Below are positions 6,135-47,353 of a DNA stretch of 64,000 bases, piece after piece. The position numbers and the translations under genes are program-made. This DNA is from Bacillus subtilis subsp. subtilis str. 168 (lineage in GTDB: Bacteria > Bacillota > Bacilli > Bacillales > Bacillaceae), in NCBI RefSeq assembly GCF_000009045.1, contig NC_000964.3:3100001-3164000 (forward strand). Direction: 5' to 3'. The notes below the pieces were generated by a model that was not told the origin of the DNA, made no database searches, and worked only from the letters and a program-made list of their open reading frames with translations. How positions within the stretch are numbered: the first letter of the stretch is position 1; the number at the start of each line of letters is the position of its first letter.

Positions 6135-6209
6135 TACTGTAGAATTCATTTTTAAAAAGGGGAATATCAGGCTTTCGCATAGCAAGCTGACGGCCTAAGG
6201 GGGATTTAT

Positions 6210-38977: not shown

Positions 38978-39226
38978 TTATTTCCCCATGTTATAGCGTT
39001 TTTTGAACTGCTCAACTCGTCCGCCTTTTTCATTGAATTTCTGGCGGCCTGTATAAAACGGATGCGTGTCAGAGCTTACCTCTACTTTAATGACAGGATA
39101 TGTGTTTCCGTCCTCCCACTCTGCTGTTTCATTAGATGTTTTCGTAGAGGTGCTTAGAAAACGGTAGCCGCTGTTGACATCCTGAAATATCACTTTGTGG
39201 TTCTTTGGATGAATTCCTTCTTTCAT
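38978..39226 (-). CDS. rpmE2: 50S ribosomal protein L31 type B (zinc-free paralog)
   Basis: MKEGIHP...[10 protein letters not shown]; no Cys residues. Confidence 0.95.
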
Positions 39227-39293: not shown

Positions 39294-39430
39294 TCTTCTT
39301 ATATCCTTCCCTCTGTTTCACATCGTAAACCTCATGGCATTTAAGAATAGGAAGAATAATCTAACCGAGGAAGCAAATAATAAACCCAAAATACATACAG
39401 AACGTCTTTTTGGAAAGGTGGTTTACGATT

Positions 39431-40762
39431 GTGGATGATTTAGTTTTGGCCAGAAGCCTTTTTGGCACGACGATGGGCTTTCATATCATTTTCGCAACAC
39501 TTGGAGTCGGTCTGCCGCTCATGATTTTAGTGGCGGAATTGATCTATCAAAAAACGAAAGATGACCATTATGCGATCATGGCGAAAAGATGGACGAAAGC
39601 ACAAGCCGTTTTGCTGGGGGTCGCCATACCGACCGGAACGATCGCGGGCACTCAGCTCGCGCTTTTATGGCCGGGATTTATGGAAGTCATCGGCCGGGTG
39701 ATGTCCCTGCCATTTCAAATTGAAATCTATGCTTTTTTTGTTGAAGCCCTATTCATGTCGATTTATGTATACGCTGCAGACCGTTTGTCACCTGCAATGA
39801 GGATTGTTGCTGTTTTCTTTGTGTTAGTCGGGGCAGCAGCATCCGCTGTTCTGATCACGAATGTTCACGCTTTTGAAGGTACGCCCGCCGGTTTTAAAAT
39901 TTTAAACGGAAAAATTACAGATGTTGACCCGTGGGCTGCGTTTTTTAATCCTAGCTTTTTTATCACTGCCGGCCATGTCGTGCTGTCCGCGTTTATGACT
40001 GGTGCGTTTATCGTGGCTTCTGTTGCGGCGTATAAAATGATCCGAACGAGGAAAAAGGAAAGGGTCTATCGCTTTCACCGGAAAGCCCTTTTGCTCGCAC
40101 TGACGATCGGCGGTATTTTTTCATTGCTGACCGCTTTGAACGGACACGAATCTGCACAGATGCTGTACGAATACCAGCCCGAAAAATTAGCCGGTGCGGA
40201 AGGCCTATTTGAAACAAGATCCCACGCCCCGCTCGCTATCGGCGGTTTTACCGACCCGAATGAAGAAAAAGTAAAATGGGCAATCGAGATTCCATGGGCT
40301 TTAAGCTTTTTGGCAGCGAACCGTTTTGACACTGTTGTAAAAGGATTAAATGCATTTCCGAGAGATGAATGGCCGCCGCTTTTCATTCACACGCTGTTTA
40401 ATGCGATGGTTGGTGTAGGCATGCTGCTAATTCTTTATTCCATTATCGGTGTGGTCTGGAGAAAGGTGCTCAAGAAAGACCGTTTCCCAACGTGGCTTTT
40501 GATCATTTTCATGACAGCAGGCCCTTTTAGTCTCATCGGCATTGAATTCGGCTGGATTTTCGCATGTACGGGGAGGCAGCCTTGGGTCATCTATCATCTG
40601 CTGAAAACGTCAGATGTCGTAACAACGACTGGCTCGATCGGGGTGCTGTTCTTATTTTTCACATTTGTTTATGCCGTGTTAGGCGCAGCTGTCGTCTACG
40701 TGCTGCTGTATTATTTCCGCAAGCACCCGGTTGACGAAGATTTAAATACAGCGGAGTCGTAA
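39431..40762 (+). CDS. ythA: Cytochrome bd-type quinol oxidase subunit I
   Basis: GFHIIFA (heme His), GHVVLSA, YQPEKLAGAEG, GRQPW; GTG start after SD GGAAAGGTGG. Confidence 0.9.
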   Translation: MDDLVLARSLFGTTMGFHIIFATLGVGLPLMILVAELIYQKTKDDHYAIMAKRWTKAQAVLLGVAIPTGTIAGTQLALLWPGFMEVIGRVMSLPFQIEIYAFFVEALFMSIYVYAADRLSPAMRIVAVFFVLVGAAASAVLITNVHAFEGTPAGFKILNGKITDVDPWAAFFNPSFFITAGHVVLSAFMTGAFIVASVAAYKMIRTRKKERVYRFHRKALLLALTIGGIFSLLTALNGHESAQMLYEYQPEKLAGAEGLFETRSHAPLAIGGFTDPNEEKVKWAIEIPWALSFLAANRFDTVVKGLNAFPRDEWPPLFIHTLFNAMVGVGMLLILYSIIGVVWRKVLKKDRFPTWLLIIFMTAGPFSLIGIEFGWIFACTGRQPWVIYHLLKTSDVVTTTGSIGVLFLFFTFVYAVLGAAVVYVLLYYFRKHPVDEDLNTAES

Positions 40763-40805
40763 TGGCTCCGCAAACAGGAAACCAAATGGAAGGAAGATCG
40801 TACAA

Positions 40806-41846
40806 ATGGAGATTTCAACTGACGCTCTGATCGCCATCTCAATTATCTGGGGCTTTGTGTTTATTTACGCCGTCATGGCGACAATGGATTTTGGAGCGGG
40901 ATTTTGGTCTATGATCTATTTAAACAAGGAGCATATGAAGGCCACCGATATTGCGAATCGCTTTTTGTCCCCGACTTGGGAGGTCACAAACGTCTTTATT
41001 GTGGCCATCGTCGTGGCGCTTTTCAGTTTTTTCCCCGGCGCGACATTTGTGCTCGGCACCGTTTTATTAATTCCCGGAAGCATGATTTTGCTGCTTTTAG
41101 CAATTCGAAGCGGATTTCTCGTGTTTTCAAATACAGCAAAGGAGCGGAAAACGCTAAGATATATTTCCGGCATCTCCGGCTTTATCATTCCTGCTATTTT
41201 AATTTTGGTGCTTCCTGTGACACACGGAGGGTTTATAGAAAAAACGGATGGAATCTATAACTTAAATATGTCTAAAATCTTTTCAAGCCCCAACGCCTAT
41301 TCATTTATCGGGTTTGCGATTTTAAGCACCTTATTTTTGTCCTCGCTGTTGCTTGCAGATTTTTCAAATGTGGCAGAGGAACAGGATGCGTACCGAGCCT
41401 ACAGAAAAAGCGCCCTGATTACCGGCCCGATTTCACTGTTGTTTGCTGTATGCATTATGGTAACTATGCGGAATGAAGCAAACTGGCTGTACAGCGGAAT
41501 GATGAATGATTTTTCTTGGATTATTGCATCGTTCATTACATTTGTCATTGCTGGAATCGCTCTTTTTCTGCCTAACAAAAGCTTTGGTCAAAACATCGGA
41601 AAACCGCGTCTCGCACTTGTTGCGATTGGGATACAGTATTTTCTCGCAAGCTACGCGTACGGGCGGGCGCATCTTCCGTATATGATTTATCCCGATGTGA
41701 CAGTCATGTCAGGCTTCACAGAGCCAGCAACGTTCAGAGCGCTGTTTGCAACGTATATCGTTGCATTTATCATTCTATTTCCGGGCTTCTTTTTCTTCTG
41801 GAAAATGTTTATGCGAGATAAACGCTATATCCGCCAGGAGGAATAG
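40806..41846 (+). CDS. ythB: Cytochrome bd-type quinol oxidase subunit II
   Basis: MDFGAG, SPTWEVTNVF (CydB W-x-x-N-x-x-W-like motif), multi-TM. Confidence 0.88.
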   Translation: MEISTDALIAISIIWGFVFIYAVMATMDFGAGFWSMIYLNKEHMKATDIANRFLSPTWEVTNVFIVAIVVALFSFFPGATFVLGTVLLIPGSMILLLLAIRSGFLVFSNTAKERKTLRYISGISGFIIPAILILVLPVTHGGFIEKTDGIYNLNMSKIFSSPNAYSFIGFAILSTLFLSSLLLADFSNVAEEQDAYRAYRKSALITGPISLLFAVCIMVTMRNEANWLYSGMMNDFSWIIASFITFVIAGIALFLPNKSFGQNIGKPRLALVAIGIQYFLASYAYGRAHLPYMIYPDVTVMSGFTEPATFRALFATYIVAFIILFPGFFFFWKMFMRDKRYIRQEE

Positions 41847-42060: not shown

Positions 42061-42095
42061 AAAAGAAAGAGCTGCATCAGCCAGCTCTTTCTTTT
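42061..42095. terminator. Bidirectional terminator ytzL/mntD
   Basis: AAAAGAAAGAGCTG-catcagc-CAGCTCTTTCTTTT overlapping the last mntD codons. Confidence 0.85.
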
Positions 42096-42964
42096 TGCAT
42101 GTTGAGTGTTCTCAGCTTTTTAGTTATGACCCCGTTTGCAGGTGAAAACAAAAAGGCGCTTGCATAACATACACCTGTCATGGCCGCCATCGCTCCTGAA
42201 ATCGAAACATTAAGCCACGTTGCGAAGAAATAGCCCATGACCGCCGACAGCCCGCCAATCAACGCGCTGAGAATCAGCATATAAAGAAGCCGGTCTGTCA
42301 GCAAATGTGCCGCAGCCGGCGGAACAATCAGCATGGCCACAACCAATACGGCACCCACCGAATCAAAGGAAGCAACAGTCGTCAAGGACAGCATGCCCAT
42401 TTGCACGTAATGAATGAGCAAAACCGGTATTCCCAAGGCTAAAGCCATTTGAGGATCAAACGAAGCGATTTTAAACTCCTTATAGCACACACTGATCAAC
42501 ACTACGTTTAAAACCAGAACAGATGCCAGCATCCAAAACGCTTTCGGCCCAATATCAACCCCGAATACCGTCACCGTATTCCACGGCACAAAAGCGATTT
42601 CTCCCATTAACGAGTGCTCAATATCGAGATGGACATTCGCTCCATACACAGAAAGCAAAATAACCCCGATTGCAAATAAGGATGTAAACACAACTCCTAT
42701 GGCAGCATCTGATTGAACCCCCTTGCTATGAAGAAGCTGAACCAAGAAAGCCGTTAACAGACCGGTTGCGGCTGCGCCAATAAACATATAAATCCCATCG
42801 AGACTTCCCGTCACTAGAAAAGCGCCGACAATGCCAAGCAACACTGTGTGACTGATTGCGTCGGCCAGCATCGCCATGCTTCTCAGCACAAGAAATGTGC
42901 CGATCAATCCGCAGCTTACACCGACTAATACACCGGTAGCTATAATCCATGCTTCAAAACTCAT
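42077..42964 (-). CDS. mntD: Mn ABC transporter permease
   Basis: ABC-3 permease motifs MLADAISHTVLLG and ASFDSVG; 295 aa from MSFEAW. Confidence 0.92.
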   Translation of the reverse strand: MSFEAWIIATGVLVGVSCGLIGTFLVLRSMAMLADAISHTVLLGIVGAFLVTGSLDGIYMFIGAAATGLLTAFLVQLLHSKGVQSDAAIGVVFTSLFAIGVILLSVYGANVHLDIEHSLMGEIAFVPWNTVTVFGVDIGPKAFWMLASVLVLNVVLISVCYKEFKIASFDPQMALALGIPVLLIHYVQMGMLSLTTVASFDSVGAVLVVAMLIVPPAAAHLLTDRLLYMLILSALIGGLSAVMGYFFATWLNVSISGAMAAMTGVCYASAFLFSPANGVITKKLRTLNMQKERAG

Positions 42965-44261
42965 TTGCGATCTGTCCCTTCTCGGCATCATGAGACGCTT
43001 TTCGACGCTCAGGCATCCGTCCATACAGCTTTAAGAGTGAATAAAGCCGCTCTCTCGTTTCTCTCGGTAAACGGTCCGGGTCAAAGTAGTCCTGATCGGA
43101 TTCTATATTGGCAAGTTCCATTTCATGCATGAGATACACTTCATACATCCGCTGCTTCAAAGCTGTGTGATAGCCTTTTTCTATCCCTTTGCTTGTGATT
43201 TGCCAAATCCCATTTTCGATACGCTCAATGCACCTCTCTTGTTCCAAGTCATTTAATGCCTTAAGGCATAATGAAGGGGATAGGCGTCTTTTCTTTCTTA
43301 CACTTTCAACAGTTACACAAAGATTATTCTTTTCATACTGTTCATAAATCGCCAAAAGCACTTGCTCCCTGCTTGTTCTGCGCCGCAGCCTCATCAGCCT
43401 TATGGCTTTAGCAGCCAATCCCCGCTTAGGCGCGCAAATCATTGAAAAAAGAAAGAGCAGCGTTGCAGATAAGATCATTAATGGCCCTGTCGCCATTCCC
43501 TTCATCGTGGTGCTAAGCAGGGTTCCGGCCACTCCGCTGACCCCGCCTGTAATCCCGGCAATGATGATCATCCCGGTTAATCGTTCGGTCCAATATCTCG
43601 CGGTTATGGCAGGTGTAATCAGCATAGCCGCCATTAATATCACACCAACAGTCTGAAGCCCAATGACGACAGCACAGACAATCAGACAAGCCAAAAGCCC
43701 GTTTAAAAAACGCACCGGGATTCCTAATCCCTTTGCAAACGCGAGATCAAAAGTAATCAATGTAAATTCCTTAAAGAAAACAATACATAGGAGCAGTAGA
43801 ACAGCGGATATCCCTGCAATAAGGATGATATCCTGCCTGACCAATGAAGCAGCCTGGCCGAATAAAAAAGAATCAAGCCCGCTTTGGCTTCCCGCCCCCT
43901 GTTGCTGAATATATGTCAGCAGAATGATCCCGACGCCAAAAAACACAGAAAGAACAATCCCGATCGCCGAGTCCTCCTTTGTTTTTGAAAGCCGAGGAAT
44001 CAGCTGAATACAAAACGTTCCGAGCAGTCCGGCGAGCGCTGCCCCCAGCAAAAAGAAAGGCAGTGATTTTTGCCCGGTGAACAGAAAAGCGAGACACACT
44101 CCCGGCAGAGCTGAATGGGCCATCGCATCGCCGATTAAACTTTGCTTTCTCAGCAGCACAAAGCTGCCCAAAACACCGCTTGCCGTCCCGAGCAAAAGCG
44201 TACCGGCCAGCACCCACTGTGTATTCGGATGCTGAAGCTGCAGCCACAAACTTTCAAACAT
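42954..44261 (-). CDS. mntC: Mn ABC transporter permease with C-terminal DtxR-like domain
   Basis: IGDAMAHSALPG, LFGQ, LQTVG permease motifs followed by a ~155-aa soluble wHTH tail; SD AAGGAG. Confidence 0.92.
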   Translation of the reverse strand: MFESLWLQLQHPNTQWVLAGTLLLGTASGVLGSFVLLRKQSLIGDAMAHSALPGVCLAFLFTGQKSLPFFLLGAALAGLLGTFCIQLIPRLSKTKEDSAIGIVLSVFFGVGIILLTYIQQQGAGSQSGLDSFLFGQAASLVRQDIILIAGISAVLLLLCIVFFKEFTLITFDLAFAKGLGIPVRFLNGLLACLIVCAVVIGLQTVGVILMAAMLITPAITARYWTERLTGMIIIAGITGGVSGVAGTLLSTTMKGMATGPLMILSATLLFLFSMICAPKRGLAAKAIRLMRLRRRTSREQVLLAIYEQYEKNNLCVTVESVRKKRRLSPSLCLKALNDLEQERCIERIENGIWQITSKGIEKGYHTALKQRMYEVYLMHEMELANIESDQDYFDPDRLPRETRERLYSLLKLYGRMPERRKASHDAEKGQIANEF

Positions 44262-44266
44262 TGCGC

Positions 44267-45019
44267 TCACTCCTTATGTCCTTCTGCCAGCACTTTATCT
44301 TTTAAAAACGTAAGCCTTCCTCCATATGTTTTTTGCAGGTTTTCGATCGTAAAAACGTTTTCCGTCGGTCCGAAAGCGATTTTCCTTAAATGAAGCAGTA
44401 AGATCCAATCGAAATAATCCTCGGCGGTCTGCAGATCATGATGGACGACAAGCACGGTTTTTCCTTTTTCTTTGAGTTCTGCCAACAGCGTCATAATCGC
44501 GCGCTCCGTCGCTGCATCAACACCTGCAAACGGTTCATCCATAAAATAAATGTCAGCGTTCTGGCAGAGTGCCCGGGCAAGAAACACCCGCTGCTGCTGT
44601 CCGCCTGACAGCTGGCTGATTTGCCTTTTCGCATAATCATGCATCCCGACTTTTGTTAATGCGGCCTTCGCCATCTCCACATCCGCTTTCTTTGGCCTCT
44701 TTAATAAACCGATTCTCCCGTATCTTCCCATTAGGACGACATCGAGCGGGCTTGTGGGGAAATCCCAGTCAACCGAGCCGCGCTGCGGAACATATCCGAT
44801 TCTGGTCCGCTGATCCTTATAGTCTTTGCCGTAAATAGAGATGTCTCCGGAAGCTCTGGGCACAAGACCGAGAATCGTTTTGATCAAGGTTGATTTTCCC
44901 GCGCCGTTTGGGCCGATAATGCCAATAAGTTTTCCTTCAGGCACCTGCAGCGAAATGTCCTGCAGTACAGGCTTTTTATGATAAGCAACCGTCACATTAT
45001 CAAGCTCAACAGGGAACAT
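44267..45019 (-). CDS. mntB: Mn ABC transporter ATPase
   Basis: GPNGAGKS, LSGGQ, YFMDEP. Confidence 0.93.
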   Translation of the reverse strand: MFPVELDNVTVAYHKKPVLQDISLQVPEGKLIGIIGPNGAGKSTLIKTILGLVPRASGDISIYGKDYKDQRTRIGYVPQRGSVDWDFPTSPLDVVLMGRYGRIGLLKRPKKADVEMAKAALTKVGMHDYAKRQISQLSGGQQQRVFLARALCQNADIYFMDEPFAGVDAATERAIMTLLAELKEKGKTVLVVHHDLQTAEDYFDWILLLHLRKIAFGPTENVFTIENLQKTYGGRLTFLKDKVLAEGHKE

Positions 45020-45037
45020 ATCCTCCACCTCTTTTCT

Positions 45038-45958
45038 TTATTTAAGCGCTTTAGTAATCGTGTTGATATTGTGGCGGAACATTCCTTCGTATGTGCCTTC
45101 TTTTGTGCCCTTTTCACCCATGGCATCCGAATAAAGCTGACCGCCGATTGTGACTGTATGGCCTTTTTCTTTAGCGCCTTCCACCACTGCATTGATTGAT
45201 TTTTCAGATACACTGCTTTCTACGAACACAGCTTTTATTTGTTTTTCTGTCAGAAGATCAACCAGCTCCTGAACATCCCTTAATCCATAGTCCGAATCTG
45301 TGCTGAGTCCCTGCAGGCCTTTTACCTTAAATCCATACTCATTCCCAAAGTACGCAAACGCATCATGAGCAGTCACAAGCACACGGCTTTTCTCCGGAAT
45401 ATGTGCGATCTCCTTACGCGACCACTTATCTAAATATTGCAAATCTTCTTTGTACTCTTTGGCATTTTTCCGAAAGGCATCTGCGTGCTGAGGCATTGCT
45501 TTGCTGAATTGCGCTTCAATTTCATCCACCGCATAGATCCATAACGGAATGCTGAACCAGACGTGGGGATCAAACGTCTTGCCTTCCCCCGCGGGAATAA
45601 GCTTATTTTTCGGAATGGCCTCAGCTACTGCCGCCGATTGTTTTTGTTCGCCGATTTTTTGGAGGACATCCTCCATTTTCCCTTCCAAATGCAACCCGCT
45701 GTACAGAACAACATCGGCAGACATTAATTTTTTCGTGTCACCTTGGGAAGCTTTGTAAAGGTGCGGATCAACCCCCGGTCCCATTAAAGAGGTGACTTTT
45801 ACGTGCTTACCTCCGATGTTTTCTGCTGCATCGGCAATTTGAGATGTTGTCGCTGTCACTTGTAATTGCTGATCAGCGCTTTTTCCGGCTGAATCCGTTC
45901 CGCATCCCGTTAAAGCAAAGGTCGCAAAAAGTACTGCTGCCATCAGCCCTTGTCTCAT
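45038..45958 (-). CDS. mntA: Mn-binding lipoprotein (TroA family)
   Basis: Lipobox LTGC; metal ligands DPHLY, DPHVW, HDAF, SD; SD GAGGAGG. Confidence 0.95.
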   Translation of the reverse strand: MRQGLMAAVLFATFALTGCGTDSAGKSADQQLQVTATTSQIADAAENIGGKHVKVTSLMGPGVDPHLYKASQGDTKKLMSADVVLYSGLHLEGKMEDVLQKIGEQKQSAAVAEAIPKNKLIPAGEGKTFDPHVWFSIPLWIYAVDEIEAQFSKAMPQHADAFRKNAKEYKEDLQYLDKWSRKEIAHIPEKSRVLVTAHDAFAYFGNEYGFKVKGLQGLSTDSDYGLRDVQELVDLLTEKQIKAVFVESSVSEKSINAVVEGAKEKGHTVTIGGQLYSDAMGEKGTKEGTYEGMFRHNINTITKALK

Positions 45959-46068: not shown

Positions 46069-46090
46069 AAGTTTCCCTCATGCAAAATTA
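46069..46090. promoter_or_regulatory. MntR operator overlapping the -10 / transcription start
   Basis: TAATTTTGCATGAGGGAAACTT on the minus strand. Confidence 0.7.
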
Positions 46091-46113
46091 TCGCGTTTGG
46101 CCATTTTTGTCAA
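46085..46113 (-). promoter_or_regulatory. sigA promoter of mntABCD
   Basis: TTGACA-17-TAATTT. Confidence 0.75.
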
Positions 46114-46125
46114 GCTGATTTACAT

Positions 46126-46153
46126 AAAAAAACCGGCTGGGTCAGCAGCCGGT
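46126..46153 (-). terminator. men operon terminator
   Basis: ACCGGCTG-6nt-CAGCCGGT plus a U-tract on the minus strand. Confidence 0.8.
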
Positions 46154-46237: not shown

Positions 46238-47353
46238 TTAACCATGCTGTGTGAAAACATCCATTTTGGTCACATATTTTCGCATAATATCTTGGTTTAC
46301 CTCAACCCCTAAACCAGGCTGTTTTGACACAGAAATAAATCCATTATCAATACGAATATCAGGAGTTACAATATCTTCATCCCAATAGCGTGAGGATGAA
46401 GATATATCGCCAGGTATTGTGAATTGAGGCAGTGAAGCAAGCGCCACGTTCTGCGCTCTTGATATGCCTGTTTCCAGCATTCCTCCGCACCAAACCTGCA
46501 TATGATGCTCTTTGCATAAATCATGAATTTTTAAGGCTTCTGTTAAGCCGCCGACACGAGAAGGTTTTATATTAATAATTTTGCAGCTTCCTAGCTCAAT
46601 CGCCCGTCTCGCATCATCAACTGAACAAATGCTCTCATCAAGGCAAATGGCCGTTTTCAAATGTTTCTGCAAGTGGCGGTGGTCAACGATATCGTCAGCT
46701 TGGAGCGGCTGCTCAATCATCATTAAATGATAGTCATCAAGCTCCTTTAAACGGCTGATATCCTTCAGTTCGTAAGAGGAATTGGCATCGGCCATAAGCG
46801 GGATGGTTGGGAATCGGCTGCGGATGGCCTTGACCAATTCCACATCCTGCCCAGGCTGAATTTTAATTTTTATTCTTTGATAACCTTCTTTTTGATAGCT
46901 CTCAATTTCCTTCAGCATATCGTCAAGAGGCGCCAGGCCGACTACCACCCCGGCAGGGACTTTATCTCTTGTTCCGCCCAATGCCTCAGCAAGGGATACG
47001 CCCTTCTTTTTGGCATAAATATCCCATACAGCCGATTCAAGTCCCGCTTTTGCCATCCGGTTTCCTTTATACCGCGCCAGGCTGTCCGGCACTTCTGAAG
47101 GGTGATTGAATTCACGGCCGACGACATTTGGGATAAAAAAATCTTTTAGCATATGCAAACATGTTCCAATGGTTTCCTCGGTGTACCAAGGCGAAGAGAA
47201 AGCGGAAACTTCTCCCCAGCCTGTGACACCTGATGTATCAATGGCTTCCACGATCAGAAATTTACGCTCTTGAAGCGTTTCGATACTGTTTTTAAACGGT
47301 TTCTTTAAGTTCATGCTCAAATGGTAAAGCGTGATTTTTTCTATTTCGATCAT
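46238..47353 (-). CDS. menC: o-Succinylbenzoate synthase
   Basis: Enolase superfamily KIKI, DAN, EQP, DES, GGMLETG. Confidence 0.95.
   Translation of the reverse strand: MIEIEKITLYHLSMNLKKPFKNSIETLQERKFLIVEAIDTSGVTGWGEVSAFSSPWYTEETIGTCLHMLKDFFIPNVVGREFNHPSEVPDSLARYKGNRMAKAGLESAVWDIYAKKKGVSLAEALGGTRDKVPAGVVVGLAPLDDMLKEIESYQKEGYQRIKIKIQPGQDVELVKAIRSRFPTIPLMADANSSYELKDISRLKELDDYHLMMIEQPLQADDIVDHRHLQKHLKTAICLDESICSVDDARRAIELGSCKIINIKPSRVGGLTEALKIHDLCKEHHMQVWCGGMLETGISRAQNVALASLPQFTIPGDISSSSRYWDEDIVTPDIRIDNGFISVSKQPGLGVEVNQDIMRKYVTKMDVFTQHG

Follow-up and report, generated by a model that had tools for sequence, protein, structure and literature searches.

The C-terminal tail of the Bacillus subtilis manganese permease MntC is a DtxR/MntR-family module, probably left over and repurposed from an old fusion of transporter and sensor

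The chlamydial ytg genes were named after the old ytgABCD names of Bacillus subtilis. The permease of this system, YtgC-YtgR, carries as its C-terminal tail a regulator that is released by cleavage in vivo, and this regulator represses the ytg promoter, to which it binds with metal (PMC5599777). According to the summary in PMC5599777, Thompson et al. 2012 are reported to have detected permease-DtxR fusions in 11 phyla. Here we describe such a fusion in B. subtilis subsp. subtilis str. 168, within a window of 64,000 nucleotides (contig NC_000964.3, positions 3,100,001 to 3,164,000; the coordinates below are those of the window). According to its open reading frames (ORFs) and Pfam, the window contains a B. 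subtilis-type mntABCD operon with all four genes on the minus strand. The first of its two permeases, MntC, continues beyond the transmembrane domain with a tail of 159 residues (APKRG...ANEF; residue numbers follow the 438-residue, GTG-start form of the protein). This tail is a genuine DtxR/MntR-family module that comprises a winged helix and the α4-α6 region. Rather than sensing metal itself, it is probably what remains, in repurposed form, of an old fusion between a transporter and a sensor.

MntC belongs to the ABC-3 (TroCD/MntCD/ZnuB) permeases of type II ATP-binding cassette (ABC) importers, as seen from its match to PF00950 and from the adjacent genes for an ATPase and a ZnuA-family (cluster A-I) binding protein. 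Like YtgC-YtgR of Chlamydia trachomatis (CT069), it consists of an ABC-3 permease followed by a DtxR-family winged helix-turn-helix (wHTH) and a dimerisation module in one polypeptide, and in both systems the tailed permease is the first of two in an A-B-C-D metal-uptake operon, while the second is tail-less. This likeness is one of architecture and operon position; a search seeded with P0069 returned fusions from Verrucomicrobia and other PVC-type or environmental bacteria and no named Chlamydia protein. There are also differences: unlike YtgC-YtgR, the B. subtilis tail lacks the metal ligands, is undetected by PF02742 and has a variable, indel-prone reading-helix region, and B. subtilis has a separate and sufficient manganese regulator, MntR. 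The fusion had been noticed in an original prediction made from the DNA letters alone, which placed the tail at 42954-43430, within one codon of the 42957-43433 found here. The strings that it quoted (REQVLLAIY, LSPSLCLKALNDLE, ITSKG and KQRMYEVYL) are all present in MntC, and its remark that MntD has no such tail is correct (Table 1).

Searches with the single sequence hardly reveal the relationship. Neither full-length MntC nor the tail alone matches Pfam PF01325 (Fe_dep_repress) or PF02742 (Fe_dep_repr_C) at E-values up to 10, NCBIfam assigns no DtxR family to the tail, and its Pfam hits are confined to sub-threshold winged-helix matches (DnaD_N 0.009, Mrr_N 0.03); precomputed Pfam annotations of the B. 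subtilis-group orthologs give PF00950 and PF01032 only. With the single tail, phmmer found one marginal match in the PDB, SSO2273 (E 0.0019), a word-based homolog search stayed within the B. subtilis group, and exhaustive phmmer against 1.8 billion representatives yielded only 29 relatives. The full-length proteins among these relatives are ABC-3 permeases of 430-460 residues that bear a similar tail, and those from outside the Bacillales combine PF00950 with PF02742 (1e-14 to 1e-27; 1e-12 to 1e-27 over all relatives with intact motifs) and the textbook motifs 'HRLWE...DHVxRDADxIEH'; IMG labels such fusions 'permease subunit/Mn-dependent DtxR family regulator'.

Profiles built from several tails identify the family. 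A profile of seven Bacillales tails matches SloR (3.5e-11), ScaR (8e-10), 6o5c (5e-8), DtxR (~1e-3) and MntR (0.016) in the PDB, as well as IdeR, and the alignments with SloR, ScaR and the like span α1 to α6. The alignment of the tail to stand-alone regulators by hhalign extends over 136 columns with a probability of 97.7 % (E 1.9e-12). A hidden Markov model (HMM) built from ligand-intact tails together with SloR and ScaR, and containing no Bacillales tail, gives a score of 66 bits for the tail of B. subtilis (E 2e-22), compared with 11.9 bits for the best of 2000 shuffles. The family check suggested by the original prediction (HHpred/Pfam) fails with Pfam on the single sequence and succeeds with profile searches and hhalign, and the resemblance to DtxR/MntR that had been seen by eye is borne out. 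An AlphaFold2 (AF2) model, likewise suggested there, shows the expected winged helix and long α4. With the seven-sequence alignment, AF2 reaches a predicted local distance difference test score (pLDDT) of 80.9 and a predicted template modelling score of 0.73 (pLDDT 57.9 from the single sequence), and the elements follow in the order linker helix plus α1, β, α2, α3, a two-stranded wing, long α4 and α6. Foldseek with this model retrieves Thermoplasma acidophilum IdeR, SSO2273, DtxR, IdeR, MntR, SloR and ScaR at TM-scores of ~0.4-0.55 (~0.5 for IdeR, DtxR, MntR and SloR), a range that also includes the MarR-type ZitR.

The tail shares its fold with SloR/ScaR/TroR-type regulators and with MntR, DtxR and IdeR, in the order α1, α2-turn-α3, wing, long α4, α5-α6. 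After the basic linker APKRGLAAKAIRLMRLRRRT it reads SREQVLLAIYE...KGQIANEF, and in the AF2 model the linker is continuous with α1 as one helix (tail residues 3-34). The wHTH elements are α1 REQVLLAIYEQYE, α2 VESVRKKR, α3 PSLCLKALNDLEQ and the wing IERIENGIWQI; they are followed by α4, GIEKGYHTALKQRMYEVYLMHE, the most conserved motif, by an acidic loop, NIESDQDYFDPDRLP, which stands where the 'DHVxRDADxIEH' metal site would be, and by α6, RETRERLYSLLKLYGRMP. As in these regulators, α4 has a conserved 'RLxE' and the wing a conserved 'LT..G'. Unlike the stand-alone metalloregulators, it has no SH3-like or FeoA third domain and no canonical 'SPxAVTxMVKKL' reading helix, and it is tethered to a membrane protein by a basic helix. 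Because the linker is rich in Lys and Arg and free of acidic residues, the positive-inside rule would place the tail in the cytoplasm; the number of transmembrane helices of MntC estimated by hydropathy is too crude to fix the topology.

The tail has lost its usual metal ligands. In an alignment of 70-odd tails with SloR and ScaR, the seven canonical positions (D7, H76, E80, H95, E99, E102 and H103 in SloR) read Q, Q, E, D, Y, P and D in B. subtilis, E80 alone being kept. The equivalent positions are D8, H77, E99, E102 and H103 in MntR and H79, E83, H98, C102, E105 and H106 in DtxR, numbered as in the published structures and in agreement with the alignments here. Q303 occupies the D7/D8 position, E377 corresponds to E80, and Q373 stands at the position of SloR H76, MntR H77 and DtxR H79, as the original prediction had proposed for the His of the HRL motif. 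It had also described the second site as degenerate, and at SloR H95, E99, E102 and H103 the tail indeed has D/Y/P/D or similar, within the carboxylate-rich loop NIESDQDYFDPDR. In contrast to stand-alone metalloregulators, the tail has no equivalents of H76/H79, H95/H98, E99/C102, E102/E105 and H103/H106, and the conserved ligands of a functional metalloregulator are lost at six of the seven positions. All Bacillales tails are likewise degenerate, with the Glu of 'RLxE' (HRLxE) as the sole survivor and E377 nearly invariant; fusions from other phyla retain the ligands, with N/H/D, H, E, H/D, D/E, E and H at the seven positions. We infer that metal sensing through the canonical sites is absent. 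With six of the seven positions lost across the Bacillales, B. subtilis included, the suggestion that the transporter carries a tethered metal sensor is unlikely to hold as far as these sites are concerned.

In the Bacillales clade the best conserved parts are the basic linker, α1, the wing 'LT..G', the α4 motif (Q/N)R(L/M)(Y/M/W)(E/D)(V/M)YLM(H/N)E and the α6 motif 'LP.E....L..LL...GR.P'; in the former metal loop, the conservation seen in the ligand-intact clade is gone. The least conserved part is α2-turn-α3-wing, and α2-turn-α3 has been shortened independently by seven residues in B. velezensis (L023, ~6140-6170) and by eight in B. suaedaesalsae (L032), with α4 and α6 remaining conserved in both species despite the deletions. 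The canonical reading helix SPxAVTxM(V/I)K+L occurs in no tethered tail, while stand-alone regulators of the same loci keep it, and among ~130 ligand-intact fusions examined none has PF01325 and all have PF02742. Since they lack both PF01325 and the canonical reading helix, tethered tails look, as a class, to be specialised away from canonical operator reading. The second role suggested in the original prediction, that of a DNA-binding module, is weakened by the same observations, and the MntC tail probably reads no conserved operator.

A locus scan with the seven-tail alignment, using one genome per species, provided 55 loci, in all of which the order is mntA-B-C(tail)-D. They derive from the B. 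subtilis group, B. velezensis, Metabacillus, Peribacillus, Anoxybacillus, Sutcliffiella, Priestia endophytica, Siminovitchia and Brevibacillus, and also include a metagenome-assembled genome (MAG) of the Symbiobacteriaceae and several non-Bacillota MAGs; in every one of the Bacillales loci, MntD has no tail. More than 266 permease-DtxR fusions were found overall. In a tree, the Bacillales tails fall on one side of a branch with 99/97 support, and the ligand-intact tails with SloR and ScaR on the other, a split consistent with the ligands having been lost once, long ago, though long branches keep this provisional. Many ligand-intact fusions, of PVC-type and other environmental bacteria, have 480-560 residues and exceed the B. 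subtilis type by ~50-100 residues, in a segment that Pfam leaves unannotated.

It is conceivable that the tail is a functionless relic, retained only because mntD has its ribosome-binding site and start codon in the 3' end of mntC and because there is no selection for its removal. The tail does evolve ~3 times faster than the permease: its identity is 68 % to B. halotolerans (permease 91 %) and 46 % to B. velezensis (transmembrane domain 79 %). In addition, the last codons overlap the mntD start, and most ABC-3 permeases, MntD included, work without a tail. However, over residues 300-420, a region without mntD overlap, the ratio of nonsynonymous to synonymous substitution rates (dN/dS) in the B. 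subtilis group is 0.17-0.26, with an upper 95 % bound of <=0.51 (0.06-0.08, and at most 0.10, in the transmembrane domain), and there are no indels in the tail among eight B. subtilis-group species. By these ratios the tail, at a dN/dS of ~0.2, is under purifying selection. Its ORF is uninterrupted in 52 of the 55 loci, from Bacillus to Brevibacillus, its AF2 fold is confident and the α1, α4 and α6 motifs are strongly conserved, all of which makes a mere relic quite improbable. In the remaining three loci, a single-base indel splits the tail ORF (B. stercoris D7XPN1, L008; Bacillus sp. CSS-39/B. haimaensis, L055; and a MAG, L054). We considered these truncations as a sign that the tail is dispensable and rejected this idea, since each is a single-base indel beyond which the frame is open and conserved; they are probably assembly or sequencing errors, or very recent events. 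NCBI annotates the remainder of the L055 tail as a 68-residue hypothetical protein.

Some relatives carry two tails. In five loci from uncultured-bacterium MAGs (L030:2224-7758, L036:2669-7789, L037:2689-7904, L044:2706-7755, and L054), both permeases bear ligand-intact, DtxR-like tails (PF02742), which have ~130 residues in the first four. In all of these except L054, a canonical stand-alone regulator with PF01325, PF02742 and FeoA is encoded upstream of the operon, so the tethered tails are not the sole regulator there. These regulators possess the SloR/ScaR-type helix '(V/I)SPAAVTKM(V/I)KRL', which the tethered tails in the same loci lack. The two-tailed loci support a transporter-directed role, falling short of proof. 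MetN (C2 domain), ModC and MalK provide examples of C-terminal regulatory domains of ABC importers that mediate trans-inhibition; they reside on the ATPase, and their substrate binding has been shown. Like the tails they are extra cytoplasmic domains of an importer, and ligand-binding forms of the tail could couple internal substrate to transport in a similar way. As a conceptual analogy, the two-tailed ligand-intact relatives (L030, L036, L037 and L044) would fit this logic. The MntC tail, in contrast to these domains and their unrelated folds, sits on the permease, is DtxR-like and has lost its ligands.

Taken together, the sequence comparisons and the model favour, at about an even chance, the view that the tail is a metal-blind pseudo-sensor, a cytoplasmic appendage of the MntB2CD importer with a transporter-proximal action. 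The tail goes back to an ancient event in which an ABC-3 metal permease and a DtxR-type sensor were fused, as in the YtgC-YtgR family, and the canonical ligands would have been lost in the common ancestor of the tail-bearing Bacillales (the B. subtilis group, Metabacillus, Anoxybacillus, Sutcliffiella, Priestia endophytica and Brevibacillus). The tail would have been kept on the first permease alone and be held under the membrane by the rigid basic helix. There, it may act through the conserved surface of α1, α4 and α6, its target being the transporter, a second tail or some partner protein. The tail would not be an operator-reading, metal-activated repressor, and transcriptional control by manganese would be left to the stand-alone MntR. 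We infer a transporter-proximal role on these grounds; of the interpretations in the original prediction, the DtxR module homologous to YtgCR-type tails stands, whereas the role as sensor is unlikely at the canonical sites, that as DNA-binding module is weakened and that as decoy lacks support.

Several observations weigh against a metal-blind, transporter-bound tail, and the first group concerns metal. B. spizizenii TU-B-10 and B. rugosus have His at the equivalents of both H76 and E99 (LKHRMYE...DQDHFDPD), which may reflect partial retention or regain of ligand-like residues. The B. subtilis group conserves a carboxylate-rich loop, DQDxFxPDR (D392, D394, D399), whose alignment is uncertain and whose AF2 pLDDT is 64-74. 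Because of these His residues, the conserved acidic loop and its low model confidence, the tail may still contain a non-canonical, low-affinity manganese site. In that case the tail could be a residual or re-evolved tethered sensor, in which cytoplasmic manganese binds to residues of the loop and of α1/α4 and slows import by trans-inhibition. The near-invariance of E377 would agree with this, as would the ligand-intact tails on both permeases beside a separate canonical regulator, which fit transporter-directed sensing. On the other hand, the loop is neither acidic nor conserved outside the B. subtilis group (LKTRDDLNL in Metabacillus, SNWREGSMDLL in Sutcliffiella), it is poorly defined in the model, and with a single tail per complex a clamp formed by a tail dimer is unavailable. 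A metal-gated tail is, on this evidence, unlikely.

A second group of points against the favoured view concerns DNA. It is important to point out that the reading helix also varies among the ligand-intact fusions, for which reason its variability alone is no proof of lost DNA binding, that the basic patch RKKRR before α3 is kept in the B. subtilis group, and that the one studied member of the family, the chlamydial YtgR, is a released, DNA-binding protein (PMC5599777). The net charge of the wHTH is ~+0.7 in the degenerate and the intact clades alike. The MntC tail might be liberated by a protease and bind DNA as a dimer, either metal-free or through a new carboxylate site, adding a second layer to mnt regulation. 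In architecture and operon position it matches YtgC-YtgR, in which the released tail acts as repressor at the ytg promoter (PMC5599777); the model shows a complete wHTH fold with high confidence, the B. subtilis group conserves the acidic loop, and the 'dimerisation' helix α4 is the best conserved part of the tail. However, the canonical switch ligands of the DtxR family are absent, α3 shows little conservation and has lost residues in B. velezensis and B. suaedaesalsae, and there is no conserved internal start codon or cleavage motif. We considered M293 as an internal start for a separate tail protein and rejected it, as its AAGG is weak and badly spaced and the residue is Ile in relatives. 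To our knowledge, B. subtilis genetics attributes the control of mntABCD to MntR alone. A released regulator seems improbable as well.

The third point is one of stoichiometry. Since each MntB2CD has a single tail, a dimer of the DtxR kind could form only between two transporters or with a different partner, and the evidence on the B. subtilis tail itself consists of sequence and model. An external partner could be soluble MntR, with which the tail would heterodimerise through the DtxR-type interface and which it would sequester or modulate at the membrane, as the original prediction had envisaged for an MntR-interacting decoy. The single tail per transporter would make an external partner plausible, and α4-α6, homologous to the dimer interface of the family, is conserved. 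Against this, the tail is closer to SloR and ScaR than to B. subtilis MntR, to which its profile similarity is weak and partial (E 0.25, residues 18-81 only), it groups with fused tails and SloR/ScaR-type proteins, and nothing here suggests co-variation with MntR. The decoy is left without support and is very unlikely.

Two further candidates within the tail were discarded. Two Cys residues in α3 and β2 looked like a possible metal site, but they are Phe or Leu in other genera and hence core positions. The ending 'EKGxxxNE(F/L)', which is seen in many Bacillales, was considered as a C-terminal docking motif; it coincides with a Shine-Dalgarno-like AAAGGA and the ATG of mntD, and since this ribosome-binding site and start codon overlap the extreme C-terminus, they explain its conservation better, which is probably at the nucleotide level. 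MntD begins with MSFEAW, its start codon lying inside the last mntC codons, and the overlap of the two genes implies translational coupling. The coordinates of these and the other features are collected in Table 1.

Table 1. Features of MntC and of the mntABCD operon, in window coordinates
Feature	Position	Strand	Evidence or remark
mntC coding sequence	42954..44270	-	438 residues from GTG 44270; stop codon 42954-42956 (ORF list)
ABC-3 (type II importer) transmembrane domain, residues 14-279	43434..44231	-	Pfam PF00950, 5.6e-83
Basic juxtamembrane linker, residues 280-299 (APKRGLAAKAIRLMRLRRRT)	43374..43433	-	8 K/R in 20 residues, no acidic residue
Winged helix-turn-helix, residues 300-358	43197..43373	-	AF2 pLDDT 87-94; HMM and hhalign alignments; Foldseek
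Homolog of DtxR dimerisation/metal-binding helices, residues 359-415	43026..43196	-	Ligand table and conservation profile
C-terminal end, residues 416-438	42957..43025	-	AF2 confidence <50 from residue 426 (tail residues 147-159, the last 13)
mntC 3' end/mntD start overlap, 11 nt	42954..42964	-	A-ATG-AGTTTTGA; overlap sequence AATGAGTTTTGA
mntD coding sequence	42077..42964	-	ATG 42964, 295 residues, second permease; Pfam ABC-3 extends to protein end, no C-terminal extension
mntB, ABC ATPase	44267..45028	-	Pfam ABC_tran 4.6e-33
mntA, lipoprotein solute-binding protein	45038..45958	-	Pfam ZnuA 3.8e-81
mntA promoter	46069..46113	-	TTGACA, 17 nt, TAATTT; AATTTTGCATGAGGGAAACTT overlaps the -10 element (sequence)

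The mechanical ORF starts of mntA, mntC and mntD each lie upstream of the likely true starts. For mntC, the true start is probably the ATG at 44261, which would give 435 residues; close homologs have this length and bear the name 'manganese ABC transporter permease MntC [Bacillus subtilis]'. For mntA it is the ATG at 45958, preceded by the Shine-Dalgarno sequence AGGAGGAG. The element AATTTTGCATGAGGGAAACTT at the mntA promoter would be the MntR operator of Que & Helmann 2000. At ~46125-46150, a GC-rich hairpin with a T-run resembles a terminator and would belong to the menC-like gene upstream, an enolase-superfamily gene (MR_MLE, MenC-like) at 46238-47353 (minus strand). The other neighbours are a ribosomal protein L31 paralog (38978-39226, minus strand) and subunits I and II of a cytochrome bd oxidase (39410-41846, plus strand).

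The domain has probably been overlooked in work on manganese homeostasis, because it is missed by Pfam and goes unmentioned in the two recent overviews consulted. A 2024 survey that applied AlphaFold to the ABC transporters of B. subtilis (PMC11466899) lists MntB2CDA, yet a search of its text found nothing on an extra domain of MntC, and the first 300,000 characters of a 2024 review of metallostasis (PMC11672702) do not mention it. A search for literature linking MntC with DtxR or a winged helix produced nothing relevant, the fusion list of Thompson et al. 2012 lying outside its scope.

The finding is real, if less remarkable than 'a new sensor' would be. For the class as a whole, a role in gating transport is suggested by those relatives that combine two ligand-intact tails with a separate regulator. 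In its widest form, this is a tentative idea, possible and still rather doubtful: tethered DtxR-like domains on ABC-3 permeases might be widespread transporter-attached sensors, which exert fast post-translational feedback on the importer and not on DNA. If this were true, transcription would be left to the canonical stand-alone DtxR/MntR, and the two-tailed loci with their separate regulator, the missing reading helix in the tethered tails and the metal-blind version of the Bacillales would all be explained; the latter would still dock on MntB2CD as a brake, an assembly factor or a platform for partners. Chlamydia, the source of the known permease-repressor fusions, has long been hard to work with genetically. 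B. subtilis is a genetically easy model that pairs a naturally ligand-less tail with the well-studied MntR, and it may thus allow a role as 'sensor' to be separated from a 'structural or transport' role.

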